This document shows positions 55,916 through 62,090 of a DNA stretch of 64,000 nucleotides, one piece after another. The stretch lies in IMG/VR virus record IMGVR_UViG_3300036715_000626, positions 1 through 64,000 of that record; one strand, given 5' to 3'. A program made the translations under genes and the position numbers. Position 1 is the stretch's first letter. Every line of letters starts with the position of its first letter. The notes beneath the pieces are model-generated. The model saw only the letters and a list, made by a program, of their open reading frames with translations. It was not told the origin of the DNA and did no database searches.

Positions 55916-57181
55916 TTATTTAATAGCGTCAGCTATGTTAAATTCTAATGTCTGTATAGGTTTAAAGTGCATTGCTGACATTGATGTTGCTAGCATAATA
56001 CTACTTATATCTGTAACAAGAATAGCAATACCTGTTTTATAGTTAGCAATTGACTTACTAGCACAAATAGCGCAAAACTTATTTCCTTTTTCTCTACAAT
56101 ATTGCGGAGATCGTATGGTAATAACTTTACCTAAATACTGTTCAGGTTCTGTTATTAATTCACTTGTTTTATTTGGTAGGATTATATACCGATCTAGTAA
56201 GTTACTAACATTATTAACGGTAACTATTACTGTTTTACCTACACTAGTACCACAATCTCCATCAGAGATAGTAAGGCTTGATACCGCTCTAAGAATATCT
56301 TTAGCGGCTGATCCACCTTTCTGTGTTTCTTTACCGCGATCATAAGATCCAGAACGTGATGTGTTAAACATGTTAGTAAGTAATTGCTTATCTTTAGGGA
56401 ATCCTTCTAATAGAGAATTCTCTACTAATGCAGCTTGTCCTGATTTCTTATCAAACCCTACTTCAGAGCCAAAAGTGAGATACAGTTTACTACGCGCAGA
56501 ACTTGCTTTACCAGATGTCATTTTACCCATCGTAGGATCATCTTTTAACCACTCGGCATCATATGCTTTAAGAGCTGTTTCAAATTCTACAATCTTGGAT
56601 TGGTCTTTTACCCAGTCTTCACCATACTTAGTTAGCATCTCTTTAACAAGTTTCTTTTTAAACTCGGTTATCCCTTTAGGAGGTAACATAGTTCTTTCAG
56701 TACTAGCATATGTAGTTATACGAGATAACCCATGTAAATAACTACACGCATTTATGAACTCAAGATACTGTGGTACAGTTATTATATCATTAGACATATG
56801 TTTAGCAATGATTGTTTCTAGATCGCCCATTCTAATTCGTTTATCTATAAACGGAATAACATTACCAAAAATATCTGCTAGCATAATCTTATTAACAAGA
56901 ACTCTACCCAACTGTGTTGTTATGTCTTTATCAGCATTAGGTAAATATTCTTTACTAACCGTTACTGTATCAGCCATAGTCAAAGCAGGAGTTTTACCGT
57001 CAACTCCATCTAGGACAGTAAATACATCATCAATATTAACGTAGTATTTATTATCTTCTATTTTACAATAATCTAACTTTGGGTTAACCGCTACTACAAA
57101 CAAGGTATAAAACCATTCTAACTTACGGTGTAATCGTTTTTTAAATACATAATTTATATATTCTGACTTAGTCATGGTCAA
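55916..57181 (-). CDS. Virion RNA polymerase beta' subunit, C-terminal part (phiKZ gp80-like)
   Basis: SRSGSYDRGKETQKGG, DCGT, IRSPQYC....FCAICA, MSAMH. Confidence 0.88.
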   Translation of the reverse strand: MTMTKSEYINYVFKKRLHRKLEWFYTLFVVAVNPKLDYCKIEDNKYYVNIDDVFTVLDGVDGKTPALTMADTVTVSKEYLPNADKDITTQLGRVLVNKIMLADIFGNVIPFIDKRIRMGDLETIIAKHMSNDIITVPQYLEFINACSYLHGLSRITTYASTERTMLPPKGITEFKKKLVKEMLTKYGEDWVKDQSKIVEFETALKAYDAEWLKDDPTMGKMTSGKASSARSKLYLTFGSEVGFDKKSGQAALVENSLLEGFPKDKQLLTNMFNTSRSGSYDRGKETQKGGSAAKDILRAVSSLTISDGDCGTSVGKTVIVTVNNVSNLLDRYIILPNKTSELITEPEQYLGKVITIRSPQYCREKGNKFCAICASKSIANYKTGIAILVTDISSIMLATSMSAMHFKPIQTLEFNIADAIK

Positions 57182-58155: not shown

Positions 58156-58701
58156 ATGGCAAAGAAAAAAACACCTAAACCAGAGGTTGTTGTGGCGGAT
58201 GGAACTAACACAGGAGAAGAGTTTACACGTAACCAAAAATTAAATTGGGAAGACATCGCATTGGCTCGCAGTGAAGCATGTAAGTCACTGATCGCGCAAC
58301 AAAGTTTGACACTTGAATTAACTAAAACTTATTCTGATATAATCGAATCAGATATTGAATTAAAAGAAACCATTCTTGGAATTTCAAACTCGTACGATGA
58401 TATCGTTGATGAAATCGTCGGTATCGACGAAGCTTACAAAATGCGTACCGGTGAAGTAGCCAATGGCGATGAAGAACTTGAGTATCTACAAATCGCAGAG
58501 CGCTATATCGCTATGCAAGAAAAAGTAGCTAACATTTCAAGTTCTGGTTTTATGGACGTCTTTGTTACCTTGAAAATTAAGGGTGTCGCAGGAATTGACA
58601 CAACTGACCTAAACGCTATCGCAGAGGCTGTAGTTGATGGTAAAAAAGATATTATCAATACTATTAAAGAAGCAGAAGCTTCTACTGAAAAGGAGAGTTA
58701 A
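58156..58701 (+). CDS. Hypothetical helical protein
   Basis: 181 aa; TAATG coupling to the next gene. Confidence 0.7.
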   Translation: MAKKKTPKPEVVVADGTNTGEEFTRNQKLNWEDIALARSEACKSLIAQQSLTLELTKTYSDIIESDIELKETILGISNSYDDIVDEIVGIDEAYKMRTGEVANGDEELEYLQIAERYIAMQEKVANISSSGFMDVFVTLKIKGVAGIDTTDLNAIAEAVVDGKKDIINTIKEAEASTEKES

Positions 58702-60281
58702 TGGCTGATGATGTAAATACACCGGAAAGTGATGTTAGTCAGGAAGCACCTGTTAATACAGAACCACAACCCGAAACAAAAGAAGAACCAACACAGGTTC
58801 CTGTGCATGATGAGCCAGTTCCTAAGTATAGTGACAACCATCAAGCTACGTCGCCATATACGGATGAGAAAGCTTATGAAAAAAATAAAGGCTCGGATCT
58901 TGGTGTTGGTATGCCGGTAGCAGTAGCAAGTAAGATCATGCAGTTTTTAGATGTTTTGGAAAAACTTACTGAAGATGAAGTACAAGCGCGCTACACGCCG
59001 GAAGCTCTTGTGGCTGGCGGTATCGGTATTAATTCTATTAACCAAACTACGCACAAGGATATCTATGCTAGCGAGCTTAATGAAGATACCGATAAATTTG
59101 TAAACGGTATTAAGTTTATGGATCAAGATCTTAATTTACGACCGTTACCACTTAAAACAAATGCAGGTAAAGTTACTGGTGATATGGCTAAAGCCAGATT
59201 CACATCTATCCTTGGTATTGGTGAAGTTGTACAGATCCCGTTACATCATAGCGGTATTTGGATTGCTATTAGTCCTCCTAAGGATAACGAACTTATCAAT
59301 CTCGAAAACGCGTTATCGTCTAATCAGATTTTGTTAGGTCGTTTAACAAGTACGCTTGTATACTCTAACTACTCAGTTGTGTTTAATCGTATTCTTGTTG
59401 ATTTCATTTTAGATCATATGGTCGCTACGAGTCTTAAACTTACTGAAGAGGATGATATTCGTAACTATATCTTAATACAAGATCTCTACCCGTTAGTATT
59501 AGGTCTTATTACATCAATGTATCCTGATGGGTATAATATTACTCGTTCGTGCGCTAACACTATCGTAGAAGACGAGAATGGAGTTCCTGTATGTACATTT
59601 GTTTCTACTGCTAAAGTAGATCCTAAAAAATTACTTTGGTTAAACAGAACATCTCTTAACAAAGAGATGATGATGCATATGTCAAAACGCACGCCTAGCA
59701 GCGTTACGGTAGAAGACGTTAAATATTACCAATCTACTATTAACAAACTTGCTGACCAAGAAATCATCGTCACTGCTACCAATGGAACTATTATTAATAT
59801 TACCCTCACATCACCTACCTTGTTCGATTATATTACAAACGGTGAGTTATGGGTACAAAATGTTATTAAGAAAGCTGAAGATATCTTTGTAACTACTGAT
59901 ACTGCGGAAATTAAGAACGGTAAAGTATCTGATGTATTGTCAGCTGTATTACTTGGTATTTACAACGTATACGTCAAACGTATCGAAAGTGATGGAGCGG
60001 AAGTTGATGACCGTTACAGTATCGATGAAATTCTTGACACCATCTCGAGTGATGAGAAAATTCTTGATGAGTTTATCGAAAAAGTCCGTGCGTACATTAA
60101 TGGTGCGGTAATTGCGATTGTTGCTACACCTGACTTCGTTTGTCCTAATTGCCGTTCAAACCAACCAACACATGAACTCAAAGCGTTTAAAGATCTTGTT
60201 CCTCTTAATGTGGTAGAGAATTTTTTCGCCCTAAGCGCTCTCAGAATCAACAAAATTCGAAACCGAAACATCACGTCTTAG
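58701..60281 (+). CDS. Conserved phiKZ-like core protein with C-terminal CPNC; candidate tail/baseplate assembly chaperone
   Basis: IPLHHSGIW, MYPDGY...C, LLW, P.F.CPNC, PLNV..NFF terminus. Confidence 0.7.
   Translation: MADDVNTPESDVSQEAPVNTEPQPETKEEPTQVPVHDEPVPKYSDNHQATSPYTDEKAYEKNKGSDLGVGMPVAVASKIMQFLDVLEKLTEDEVQARYTPEALVAGGIGINSINQTTHKDIYASELNEDTDKFVNGIKFMDQDLNLRPLPLKTNAGKVTGDMAKARFTSILGIGEVVQIPLHHSGIWIAISPPKDNELINLENALSSNQILLGRLTSTLVYSNYSVVFNRILVDFILDHMVATSLKLTEEDDIRNYILIQDLYPLVLGLITSMYPDGYNITRSCANTIVEDENGVPVCTFVSTAKVDPKKLLWLNRTSLNKEMMMHMSKRTPSSVTVEDVKYYQSTINKLADQEIIVTATNGTIINITLTSPTLFDYITNGELWVQNVIKKAEDIFVTTDTAEIKNGKVSDVLSAVLLGIYNVYVKRIESDGAEVDDRYSIDEILDTISSDEKILDEFIEKVRAYINGAVIAIVATPDFVCPNCRSNQPTHELKAFKDLVPLNVVENFFALSALRINKIRNRNITS
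60221..60227 (+). other. Candidate -1 ribosomal frameshift heptamer T-TTT-TTC
   Basis: In phase (AAT TTT TTC); the -1 frame is open from 60209 to the stop at 60706. Confidence 0.6.
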
Positions 60282-60706
60282 ATATTGATTTCTTTAATTT
60301 AACCAATACCACAAAATACATCGACGATGTTTTGTACTTGTTAGACAGATGTCTAACAAGTCCTGAGAGCGCATTATTATTAGCCGATCTATATGATGCT
60401 GAATATGTAGTTGATAAACGATTTGATCGTAAATTAGATGTTAACGAAGGTATATTTGGACCTGTGCTACATAGAGAGAGTGAGAGTCTTTATGAGTTTA
60501 ATCAACTTGATATTATTCTAGATGAGTACATACAATTTGACATACTGAAAATGTACGGGTTATCCATTGATAAATATATGGAACTAACACGGTACGAACG
60601 TAGTGTATTAACGAAGAAAGCTTTGGACGCTATGCAAAAAATAAACGAAGAAGCTGAACGTTTAAGACGTGACAAGAATAACATGATGGGAGACTTAGAT
60701 AGATAA
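60221..60706 (+). CDS. -1 frame extension of 58701..60281 (ORF track start 60332 is a TTG with no RBS)
   Basis: FFRPKRSQ...HHVLDIDFF...YGLSIDKYMELTRYER. Confidence 0.6.
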   Translation, partial: FFRPKRSQNQQNSKPKHHVLDIDFFNLTNTTKYIDDVLYLLDRCLTSPESALLLADLYDAEYVVDKRFDRKLDVNEGIFGPVLHRESESLYEFNQLDIILDEYIQFDILKMYGLSIDKYMELTRYERSVLTKKALDAMQKINEEAERLRRDKNNMMGDLDR

Positions 60707-61395
60707 TGGGAAAACCTATTTCAATATTAATCGATCTAGATAGTTTATTAGATACTCGGTTACCAGTAGTGTATACACTCGATCCGGTATTAGCTTCTAC
60801 CATTATCGATAATGGAGAATACTCTAAGCGTAGAAAGGATATCTTTGGTAATATATCAAATGATATCTTTAAACCTATGTATAATGCTCGTAATAAGGGA
60901 GTACTATCGTTAGCTACACCCACTGGTATAATGAGATTCTTATTACCTTACGTAGCTGAGACTAAGATGGATCTTAAAAATAGTGACGGTCTAAACGATT
61001 TTTATATTTATATCAATGTCTATCCGTATAGTTTAGATATGACTGAACTTATCGAACTTGAGGGTGCGTTTACTCCTGTATTTGGAGATAACCGTATTAA
61101 GTTTGTTCATATGGATTTCGATGAATTATCGCCTAAATGGATTGATAACAATCTTGAAACATTGATATTATATAATGCTATCGATTGGGTTGAATATCAT
61201 ACAGCTAATACTAATATCATAAGAACACCACTTATAAGTAAGATACTTGTAGGTCCAGCTATAGCTGAAGGTAGTATTAAGACCGAAGATATAAACAAAG
61301 AGTTTTTTAAAGACATCTCTATATCATTAGGTAGTCTTATAAATTATCAAGCTATCGATGCCTCTTGTTTCTGTAGTTTACTTGTTGAAATTTAA
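60706..61395 (+). CDS. Conserved phiKZ-like core protein (HAD-like N-terminal DxD motif)
   Basis: ILIDLDSLLDTRL, Y..R..D.F, INVYPY.L. Confidence 0.7.
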   Translation: MGKPISILIDLDSLLDTRLPVVYTLDPVLASTIIDNGEYSKRRKDIFGNISNDIFKPMYNARNKGVLSLATPTGIMRFLLPYVAETKMDLKNSDGLNDFYIYINVYPYSLDMTELIELEGAFTPVFGDNRIKFVHMDFDELSPKWIDNNLETLILYNAIDWVEYHTANTNIIRTPLISKILVGPAIAEGSIKTEDINKEFFKDISISLGSLINYQAIDASCFCSLLVEI

Positions 61396-61417: not shown

Positions 61418-61447
61418 ACATATACATACCCTAGGGTATGTATATGT
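61418..61447. terminator. Perfect 30-bp palindrome between convergent genes
   Basis: ACATATACATACCCT|AGGGTATGTATATGT. Confidence 0.75.
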
Positions 61448-62052
61448 TATACTAATCTATCGAAATAGATACCTTCTTTACGACCCCAGTCTTTTAAGAC
61501 CTTAGTACGTAGTGCGATATCCTCTGCGTAACAATTTCCTTTAGTGGATCTTGCACCATAACCGCCACAATTATAACTCGCTACCATGTATTTATATGTG
61601 TTTGATACATGTTTACTTTCCCAATGTGCTTTCCACATAGAAAGATGGTTAAGAGCTATTTCACTAGCAAACTTATCATCGTATAATAGTCGGTATTTAA
61701 CTTGTGAAGCAGTATATTTATGTTTTATTTCGGGGAGCTTCATAGCCTCCGATAACATCTGTTGAAACGTTCCGAAAGAACCTGGATAAGCGGTATGACT
61801 ACCATCGCGCATATTGATTTTGTTTTGTCCAAAATCTGATTCTTTCCAACCCATACTCGCTAGTGTATATCCTAAGTTATGTTTAGCGCCGGTACGGAAT
61901 GATTGGATTAGTACTGCCTTTTGTTTAGGACTCAATGAGTCCAGCTCTTTCATATAGGTTGCTTGCTTTTCAGCATACTCCATATTTTTATTCTGGTGTA
62001 CGCTAGCACTTAAGCTCGCTATTAGAGCTATTATCAAAAGTAGAGTTTTCAT
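61447..62052 (-). CDS. Secreted lysozyme-like / lytic transglycosylase protein
   Basis: Signal peptide MKTLLLIIALIASLSA; SLT motifs WKES.FG, GTFQ, ASYNCG. Confidence 0.75.
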   Translation of the reverse strand: MKTLLLIIALIASLSASVHQNKNMEYAEKQATYMKELDSLSPKQKAVLIQSFRTGAKHNLGYTLASMGWKESDFGQNKINMRDGSHTAYPGSFGTFQQMLSEAMKLPEIKHKYTASQVKYRLLYDDKFASEIALNHLSMWKAHWESKHVSNTYKYMVASYNCGGYGARSTKGNCYAEDIALRTKVLKDWGRKEGIYFDRLV

Positions 62053-62090
62053 GGTCATCCTTCGTATCATGATTTAGAATCTCTGTATTA

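Follow-up and report, generated by a model that had tools for sequence, protein, structure and literature searches.

Near the end of the analyzed window, the whole 64,000-nucleotide stretch of IMG/VR virus record IMGVR_UViG_3300036715_000626 (positions 1 to 64,000), a 526-aa ORF is followed by a second ORF in the -1 frame that has no obvious start, which raises the question of whether the two are separate genes or a single gene read through a programmed frameshift. The initial annotation had proposed the latter, with products of ~526 and ~670 aa acting as an unrecognized tail or baseplate chaperone of phiKZ-like phages with a lambda G/GT-like layout. To address this, we first examined the sequence itself. 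The ORF is read in codons starting at positions divisible by 3 and its end reads GTG GTA GAG AAT TTT TTC GCC CTA, which places an in-phase X_XXY_YYZ heptamer, T_TTT_TTC, 17 sense codons ahead of the TAG at 60279-60281. The features of the locus are as follows.

58156..58701 (+), upstream 181-aa gene in the position of phiKZ gp78 (by synteny only), whose stop overlaps the ATG of the 526-aa gene (TAATG)
58701..60281 (+), 0-frame gene, a 526-aa ortholog of phiKZ gp77 (phrog_4585) with a predicted T4 gp26/gp51-like fold, inferred to be the short, major product
60141..60152 (+), CPNC motif (Cys481 and Cys484, within residues 481-484)
60206..60208 (+), TAA that closes the -1 frame just upstream of the heptamer
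60209..60331 (+), stretch of the -1 frame with no stop and no ATG, GTG, or TTG, holding the conserved KHxL(D/E)xDFF motif
60221..60227 (+), slippery heptamer T_TTT_TTC, overlapping the conserved Phe508-Phe509 codons and the last base of the Asn507 codon
60227..60281 (+), dual-coding overlap in which the 0-frame tail (ALSALRINKIRNRNITS) and the start of the -1 frame (RPKRSQ...) are both conserved
60227..60706 (+), -1 frame extension of 159 codons, counted from CGC at 60227, plus TAA (60704-60706), encoding a conserved, predicted all-helical domain that ends in a 37-residue helix (phrog_12109, weak hit) and inferred to be reached by frameshifting
60332..60334 (+), TTG that a gene caller would take as the start of a separate 124-aa ORF
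60706..61395 (+), next gene (229 aa, phrog_3328), whose ATG overlaps the TAA of the -1 extension (TAATG)

The layout described in the initial annotation was thus confirmed. No ATG, GTG, or TTG occurs in the open -1 frame before TTG 60332, and the 20 nt upstream of that TTG hold no AGGAG-like motif. A frameshift at the heptamer would produce a fusion of 509 + 159 = 668 aa with the junction ...VVENFF/RPKRSQ and the predicted junction peptide DLVPLNVVENFFRPK, in agreement with the sizes proposed initially. YGLSIDKYMELTRYER lies in the -1 ORF.

To determine whether this arrangement could have occurred by chance, we compared 124 distinct related loci. The Phe-Phe codons carry an in-phase T_TTT_TTN heptamer in 114 of them (107 of 117 distinct loci and all 7 nearest relatives), and the 10 exceptions keep an in-phase T_TTY tetramer in the form of G_TTT_TTY, G_GTT_TTT (as in T7 gene 10), or A_CTT_TTT. 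Both the heptamer and the -1 overlap are conserved from relatives at 53% identity out to phiKZ, 201phi2-1, Erwinia RAY, Ralstonia RP12, and a Bacillus phage. Although Phe-Phe is itself conserved as protein, so that the phase of the T run is not independent evidence, the conservation extends to synonymous sites and holds in GC-rich phages that normally avoid TTT and NNT codons. Among the loci with the heptamer, those with GC >= 45% use TTT for 23% of Phe codons and NNT for 15% of codons of the preceding residue, yet at the site they are NNT-TTT by selection, while the preceding residue varies among 10 amino acids. U_UU.U_UU.Y is also among the efficient -1 motifs in E. coli (PMC4066793).

We then examined the -1 frame downstream of the site. 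It is open for 140-206 codons in every locus whose contig extends that far, whereas the +1 frame is comparably open in only 21 of 117. The first ATG, GTG, or TTG lies anywhere from 2 to 136 codons in (median 36), 55 of 103 loci have no start preceded by a Shine-Dalgarno, and one has no start at all. Two near relatives have their first start at codons 93 and 120, and gene callers give ORFs of 67-186 aa or none. The TTG at 60332, which lacks a Shine-Dalgarno, is not conserved as a start. Nonetheless, some loci do have an ATG with a Shine-Dalgarno inside the extension, such that a free-standing short product may also be made there. The start-less stretch evolves like coding sequence in the -1 frame: after the 0-frame stop and before any start, 11 independent pairs (277 codons) differ at -1-frame codon positions 1/2/3 in the ratio 42/18/85. 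The junction is constrained as well. The 0-frame codon after Phe-Phe ends in C in 87 of 103 loci, against 23% gene-wide, and the next Leu is CTN in 88 of 95, against 65% expected, which gives a -1-frame Pro in 84 of 103, so the junction reads [Y/R]-P. Both tails are conserved as protein. SNPs switch from synonymous in the 0 frame to synonymous in the -1 frame, for instance the SNP at 60325, which is synonymous in the -1 frame.

Taken with the lack of a conserved start, these data make it likely, although no fusion protein has been observed, that the 526-aa gene and the ORF after it form one recoded gene. In this model, most ribosomes read the 0 frame to the TAG and make the 526-aa protein, while a minority slip back one base when tRNA-Phe sits on TTT_TTC, drop the last 17 residues (the end of the terminal helix), and continue in the -1 frame to give the 668-aa fusion. 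Ribosomal slippage as the mechanism, and a fixed ratio of the two isoforms made from one mRNA, are inferred. To search for a stimulatory element, we folded the window and 103 loci, but no conserved downstream hairpin was found in this analysis, which did not cover pseudoknots: the mean folding z was -0.43, against -0.21 for the upstream control, and +0.14 for the window. Rfam gave only two sub-threshold chance hits elsewhere. The efficiency may therefore be low, and the long form is probably a few per cent or less.

Transcriptional slippage, in which the phage RNA polymerase would add one U to the T run in a fraction of transcripts, would give the same fusion protein and fits the open frame, the missing start, and the conserved junction equally well. 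The site is a homopolymer of 6-8 T in most loci, UUUUUUU is noted as prone to mRNA indels (PMC4066793), and these phages use their own multisubunit RNA polymerases, whose slippage behavior is unknown. However, 41 of 107 loci have only T6 followed by C, and the 10 variant loci have runs of 5-6 T (for example GAG TTT TTC or CTT TTT ATT). Such runs are probably shorter than those giving useful slippage by bacterial-type polymerases, yet they still keep the in-phase T_TTY tetramer that A-site tRNA slippage needs, and there is no sign of selection for longer runs. We therefore regard this mechanism as unlikely. A similarly improbable alternative is that of two ordinary genes, with the downstream ORF started on its own, at TTG 60332 or another codon, or by termination-reinitiation after the TAG, and the T run being only the codons of a conserved Phe-Phe. 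The public records that we opened annotate no slippage, and the window and its two IMG/VR relatives at 47-48% identity have TTG or ATG in the same alignment column. Against this reading are the many loci without any start for 90-136 codons, the stop-free and third-position-biased stretch upstream of any start, the conserved [Y/R]P and H-V...F-G motifs upstream of the starts, the NNT-TTT kept against codon bias, and the frame relation, which is always -1.

A sequencing or assembly error in the homopolymer, or a recent frameshift mutation splitting one 668-aa gene, is effectively ruled out. Contigs from three separate metagenome runs span the T run with no inserted or deleted letters, 124 distinct loci, including finished isolate genomes, show the same split, and the 0-frame tail after the site is conserved as protein. 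No natural in-frame fusion appeared among 43 homologs of 369-558 aa or among the best 150 of 1,857 extension relatives; two 686-687-aa BFVD hits were not inspected, but the phrog_8054 alignment suggests extra N-terminal, not C-terminal, residues. No close DNA relatives were found in the phage collection by blastn, nor by tblastn with the extension, and only DNA runs were found to hold the sequence.

In phiKZ, the corresponding pair is gp77 plus the “gap” and PHIKZ076.4. Out of more than 200 genome records that hold a homolog, every record that we opened annotates either two hypothetical genes or one gene plus an empty gap, and we found no paper describing the recoding of this gene, which is found in all phiKZ-like giant phages. 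If the frameshift is real, it adds a ~76-78-kDa protein to the proteomes of these intensively studied phages and corrects the annotation of a family that spans at least 1,857 sequence clusters.

To gain insight into function, we compared the predicted structures of both parts. The AF2 model of the 0-frame protein (pLDDT 87.6) resembles the T4 gp26/gp51 baseplate-hub assembly chaperones over residues ~160-515, a comparison that the initial annotation had suggested. A structure search of the ESM Atlas gave a TM of 0.81 (normalized by the hit) to a PF12322 cluster over 248 residues, and Foldseek against BFVD found T4-like baseplate hub assembly or hub proteins with E = 1.6e-3 to 1.2e-2, probability >= 0.99, and TM (by target) of 0.45-0.56. 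T4 gp26 and gp51 are both PF12322 and are listed as hub assembly chaperones, whose mode of action is described as unknown or contradictory in a 2010 review (PMC3004832). However, sequence-level homology to PF12322 is not established; Pfam gave no hit for the window protein, 1 of 34 relatives matched, at E = 0.11, and hhalign probability was 5-36%. No PDB relatives of the main protein were found by sequence or by fold. The extension has no known relative: there was no Pfam hit and no PDB fold match, ESM Atlas scores were <= 0.65, and hhalign against T4 gp51 and gp25 gave a probability of < 1%.

The chaperone role rests on fold similarity only. gp77 is absent from the text of the phiKZ virion atlas and the Churi homolog is listed as non-structural, but the latter is detected as early as 15 min after infection, which is early for a tail-assembly factor. 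The neighbors are a virion RNA polymerase subunit (beta-like), gp79-like and gp78-like genes, and ORFs of unknown function rather than tail genes, with the same synteny in phiKZ. CPNC and the YGLSIDKY segment are conserved, and Cys481 and Cys484 are, together with Cys284 and Cys298, invariant among the closer relatives; yet nothing shows that these segments fit a chaperone role, as the initial annotation had claimed, the one link being that T4 gp26 and gp51 also carry a CPxC. On the fold-based reading, the extra helical domain with its long C-terminal helix would tie a fraction of the chaperone to a second partner, as the T domain does in lambda gpGT.

T4 has a short form (gp26) and a longer form with an extra C-terminal domain (gp51, PF12322 + PF28602), and these proteins are required for assembly and are not part of the solved baseplate. 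T4 makes its two forms from two paralogous genes and has no slippery site, the Phe-Phe close to the C-terminus of gp26 being encoded by TTC TTT. The jumbo-phage protein further has about 160 extra N-terminal residues and insertions. It is possible, although doubtful on present evidence, that giant phiKZ-like phages make the short and long forms of their baseplate-hub chaperone by recoding a single gene, and that the logic of a chaperone plus a rare chaperone-adaptor fusion at a fixed ratio arose independently in an unrelated protein family. It would then be a general requirement of long-tail assembly, and the long form would be the missing tail-length or hub chaperone of Chimalliviridae and an unrecognized essential protein of phiKZ.

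The initial comparison with lambda G/GT holds for the layout and logic only. As in lambda gpG/gpGT and the conserved -1 frameshift of tail assembly chaperones in long-tailed phages (Levin 1993; Xu, Hendrix and Duda 2004, 2013; summarized in PMC5009743), a slippery heptamer lies near the 3′ end of a morphogenesis-type gene, the -1 ORF has no start of its own, a short major and a long minor product would result at a fixed ratio, neither product is known in the virion, and the site would need no strong stimulatory structure. However, there is no sequence or fold relationship, with no Pfam hit and Foldseek probabilities to tail assembly or tape-measure chaperones of 0.12-0.33. The protein is four times larger, its gene does not lie between tube and tape-measure genes, its heptamer is T_TTT_TTY rather than G_GGA_AAG, and its binding partners are unknown. 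If confirmed, it would be a second, non-homologous example of this fixed-ratio design.

Two other frameshifted genes offer partial parallels. In E. coli dnaX (tau/gamma), two isoforms of an assembly or loading factor are made from one gene by -1 frameshifting on a homopolymeric heptamer, but the shift gives the shorter product and depends on strong flanking stimulators, whereas here it would give the longer product and no stimulator was found. In T7 gene 10A/10B, a -1 frameshift on a U-rich site (G_GUU_UUC) near the end of a structural gene adds a C-terminal extension to a minority of molecules. Gene 10 encodes the capsid protein, both of its forms are in the virion, and the proteins are unrelated, but three loci in the present family use the same type of site, G_GTT_TTT.

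The window is part of IMG/VR contig UViG_3300036715_000626, which is 205 kb long. To determine whether a -1 frameshift could operate in this region, we started by examining the 3' end of the open reading frame (ORF) encoding a 526-aa protein, whose last codons read GTG GTA GAG AAT TTT TTC GCC CTA, along with the frame into which it would shift. The relevant features are as follows.

58701-60281, ORF of 526 aa, whose ATG at 58701 follows AAGGAG
60206-60208, TAA in the -1 frame, after which this frame is open
60221-60227, T_TTT_TTC, an in-phase X_XXY_YYZ heptamer located 17 codons before the 0-frame stop
60279-60281, TAG, the 0-frame stop
60332, TTG without an upstream Shine-Dalgarno, before which the open -1 frame contains no ATG, GTG, or TTG
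60704-60706, TAA that ends the -1 frame

A shift on the heptamer would give a product of 509 + 159 = 668 aa, with the junction VVENFF/RPKRSQ. Every factual statement of the initial annotation, which had noted the heptamer, the stop and subsequent opening of the -1 frame, and the TTG devoid of a Shine-Dalgarno, holds. The T run is not an assembly error, since contigs from three separate metagenome runs (two microbial mats and one sediment) span the site with no inserted or deleted letter. The strains of this phage carried by the three metagenomes differ at 26 positions in 2 kb (58701-60706), and these differences are mostly synonymous, with a few replacements clustering in the disordered N-terminal 45 residues. 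Of the 22 single nucleotide polymorphisms upstream of the site, 17 are synonymous in the 0 frame, while 3 of the 4 located downstream are synonymous in the -1 frame, including one at 60325, before the TTG.

We next searched for relatives of the 526-aa protein, which belongs to phrog_4585. About 200 relatives were found among sequenced phages, all below 32% identity, in Pseudomonas, Erwinia, Serratia, Salmonella, Ralstonia, Klebsiella, Vibrio, Burkholderia, and Xanthomonas jumbo phages as well as in a Bacillus phage. The phiKZ ortholog is gp77, whereas the corresponding proteins are gp136 in 201phi2-1 (annotated as similar to EL gp47) and gp267 in Erwinia RAY. Synteny with phiKZ is kept in the window, where a virion-type RNA polymerase beta-like subunit at 55916-57181 (-) is followed by a gp79-position ORF (-), a gp78-position ORF (+), and then this gene. 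Forty-three metagenomic homologs at 29 to 53% identity are 369 to 558 aa long. For comparative analysis, we retrieved 144 related loci, which gave 117 distinct ones, and then the 7 nearest relatives.

The frameshift signal is conserved among these loci on five counts. Phe-Phe is conserved as protein throughout the family, and its codons, together with the last base of the preceding codon, form T_TTT_TTN in 107 of 117 loci and in all 7 nearest relatives. The 10 exceptions read G_TTT_TTY, G_GTT_TTT (the type used by T7 gene 10; PMC5009743), or A_CTT_TTT, yet all keep an in-phase T_TTY tetramer and still have the long open -1 frame. In E. coli, U_UU.Y is the second most shift-prone tetramer, and U_UU.U_UU.Y heptamers are among the efficient ones (PMC4066793). 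We then considered synonymous sites. Among the heptamer-bearing loci with at least 45% GC, TTT makes up only 23% of Phe codons, and NNT only 15% of the codons for whichever residue precedes Phe-Phe, whereas at the site these loci carry NNT-TTT by selection. Given that the preceding residue varies among Thr, Val, Ser, Leu, Tyr, Ala, Ile, Asn, Gly, and His, it is the base that is conserved and not the amino acid.

After the site, the -1 frame is open for 140 to 206 codons in every locus whose contig reaches that far, while the +1 frame is comparably open in 21 of 117. In contrast, no conserved start was found for the -1 ORF. Its first ATG/GTG/TTG lies between 2 and 136 codons after the heptamer (median of 36), no start has a Shine-Dalgarno in 55 of 103 loci, and one locus has no start at all. 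In two of the nearest relatives, the first start is at codon 93 or 120, yet the peptide is conserved from its first residues, RPKRSQ...KHILE.DFF. Accordingly, gene callers predict downstream proteins of 67 to 186 aa, or none, with N termini falling anywhere between positions 1 and 56 of the domain profile. In phiKZ, the 218-nt "intergenic gap" after gp77 and the 80-aa PHIKZ076.4 form a single stop-free -1 frame of about 165 codons that reaches back to T_TTT_TTT in gp77 (positions 4093-4553 of L146, our phiKZ locus, corresponding to NC_004629, 71442-71902, reverse strand), and PHIKZ076.4 covers only the C-terminal half of the conserved domain. To look for a coding signature before any start, we examined the stretch after the 0-frame stop and before the first possible start, in which 11 disjoint pairs of related loci (277 codons) differ at -1-frame codon positions 1, 2, and 3 in the ratio 42:18:85. 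In addition, the 0-frame codon right after the heptamer ends in C in 87 of 103 loci, against 23% gene-wide, and the following Leu is CTN in 88 of 95, against 65% expected. Together, these keep a -1-frame Pro, such that the junction reads [Tyr/Arg]-Pro, and the -1 frame is therefore under selection from the heptamer itself. The 0-frame tail after Phe-Phe is also conserved, with 13 to 19 residues in most loci and the pattern xLxxQRxxxIxxR, so both ends are real and the short product is functional. In three loci (Serratia 2050HW/Moabite-type and two ~300-kb phages), this tail is 37 codons, and the dual-coding overlap is therefore twice as long.

No conserved stimulatory hairpin was found. The 70 nt after the site fold no better than shuffles or than the upstream control, with a mean z of -0.43 against -0.21, and +0.14 for the window, and an Rfam search found nothing. 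This resembles lambda G/GT and suggests a low shift rate. Altogether, the frameshift interpretation is strongly supported by comparative evidence, although the fusion protein itself is unobserved.

Transcriptional slippage would give the same protein, but it is disfavored by the short runs (T6 followed by C in 41 loci and T5 to T6 in the variants) that nevertheless keep the tRNA-slippage tetramer. Independent initiation of the downstream ORF cannot explain the open frame, the absence of a conserved start, or the coding signature before any start, although it may add a free extension protein in the loci that have an internal ATG with a Shine-Dalgarno. An artifact or a pseudogene is excluded.

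To gain insight into the two products, we analyzed their predicted structures. The 0-frame protein was modeled with confidence (pLDDT of 87.6 and pTM of 0.87), with the first ~45 residues disordered. In this model, Phe508-Phe509 open the terminal helix 504-525, most of which is replaced in the frameshift product. No PDB relative was found by sequence or fold, but two structure comparisons point the same way. The ESM Atlas search aligned 248 residues (query 163-515) with a 260-aa representative of a PF12322 "T4_baseplate" cluster, with a TM of 0.81 normalized by the hit. Foldseek against BFVD listed, after the orthologs, "Baseplate hub assembly protein, bacteriophage T4-like" and "Baseplate hub subunit," with E values of 1.6e-3 to 1.2e-2 and probabilities of >= 0.99. 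T4 gp26 and gp51 (L150:3803-4429 [-] and L150:4480-5229 [+] in our phage T4 locus) both match PF12322 and are thus paralogs. gp26 is named "baseplate hub assembly chaperone" by NCBI, and Leiman et al. list both proteins as hub assembly chaperones and state that gp51 is absent from the particle (PMC3004832). gp26 and gp51 also carry a CPxC, and gp26 ends ...KEFFELL, with a Phe-Phe like the jumbo-phage family, but its codons are TTC TTT, which is not slippery; gene 25 starts 1 nt inside the gene 26 stop, in the -1 frame. However, sequence methods do not confirm homology, since Pfam gave nothing better than an E value of 0.11 and hhalign gave 5 to 36% probability with two alternative registers. 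We therefore claim a shared predicted fold and probable distant kinship, not membership. Among the relatives, a subgroup including the BFVD hits A0A8S5P0M5 (687 aa) and J7KJQ2 (Erwinia phage phiEaH2, 686 aa) is about 160 aa longer, and the phrog_8054 alignment (profile positions 323-677 of 693) suggests that the extra part is N-terminal and not a fused extension. The 159-aa extension is a family of its own, and its profile finds 1,857 clusters at 50% identity. It is predicted to be all-helical with a 37-residue terminal helix (pLDDT of 83.7) and has no relative in Pfam, the PDB, or the ESM Atlas.

The fixed-ratio logic is that of lambda gpG/gpGT, in which the chaperone part binds the tape measure and the frameshift-added part binds the tube protein, at about 30:1 (PMC5009743). 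By analogy, we infer that the extension would tie a minority of a gp26/gp51-like chaperone to a second component. gp77 is not mentioned in the 40-protein phiKZ virion atlas, and the Churi homolog (gp256) is listed as a nonstructural protein detected by proteomics 15 min after infection (PMC11849849), both of which fit a nonvirion factor. The chaperone function is thus plausible from the fold, yet the detection at 15 min, which is early for a presumed tail-assembly factor, and the nontail neighborhood counsel caution about a tail role. A possible parallel exists in T4, which has a short paralog (gp26) and a long one (gp51, whose family carries an added C-terminal Pfam domain, PF28602), while the jumbo phages would make a short and a long form from one gene.

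None of the annotated records that we examined (phiKZ, KEN49, 201phi2-1, RAY, Moabite, LucasX, FLC1-1B, and AgentSmith) marks slippage. Instead, they show two genes, overlapping genes (as for RAY gp267/gp266, with a 136-nt overlap), abutting genes, or a gap. Full-text searches found no paper describing it, although they were not exhaustive and prior mention elsewhere cannot be excluded, and the 2016 recoding review, the jumbo-phage comparative paper, the core-genome paper, and the phiKZ and Goslar structure papers do not mention it. While the mechanism is of a known kind, its presence in this protein family and phage group appears to be new.

The surroundings of the shift site include the following features.

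58698-58703, TAATG overlap linking the gp78-position gene to the 526-aa gene
60704-60708, TAATG overlap linking the -1 extension to the next gene
60706-61395 (+), the next gene, phrog_3328
61418-61447, 13-bp perfect hairpin flanked by T-rich sequence
61447-62070 (-), ORF of 207 aa, phrog_600, function unknown

The stop that abuts the ATG of the downstream gene is the one in the -1 frame and not the 0-frame TAG. The hairpin, on which two sub-threshold Rfam hits fall, probably by chance, sits between the convergent genes 60706-61395 (+) and 61447-62070 (-) and looks like a bidirectional terminator that would close the operon holding the frameshift gene. The 207-aa ORF has a hydrophobic N-terminal segment that looks like a signal peptide or membrane anchor.
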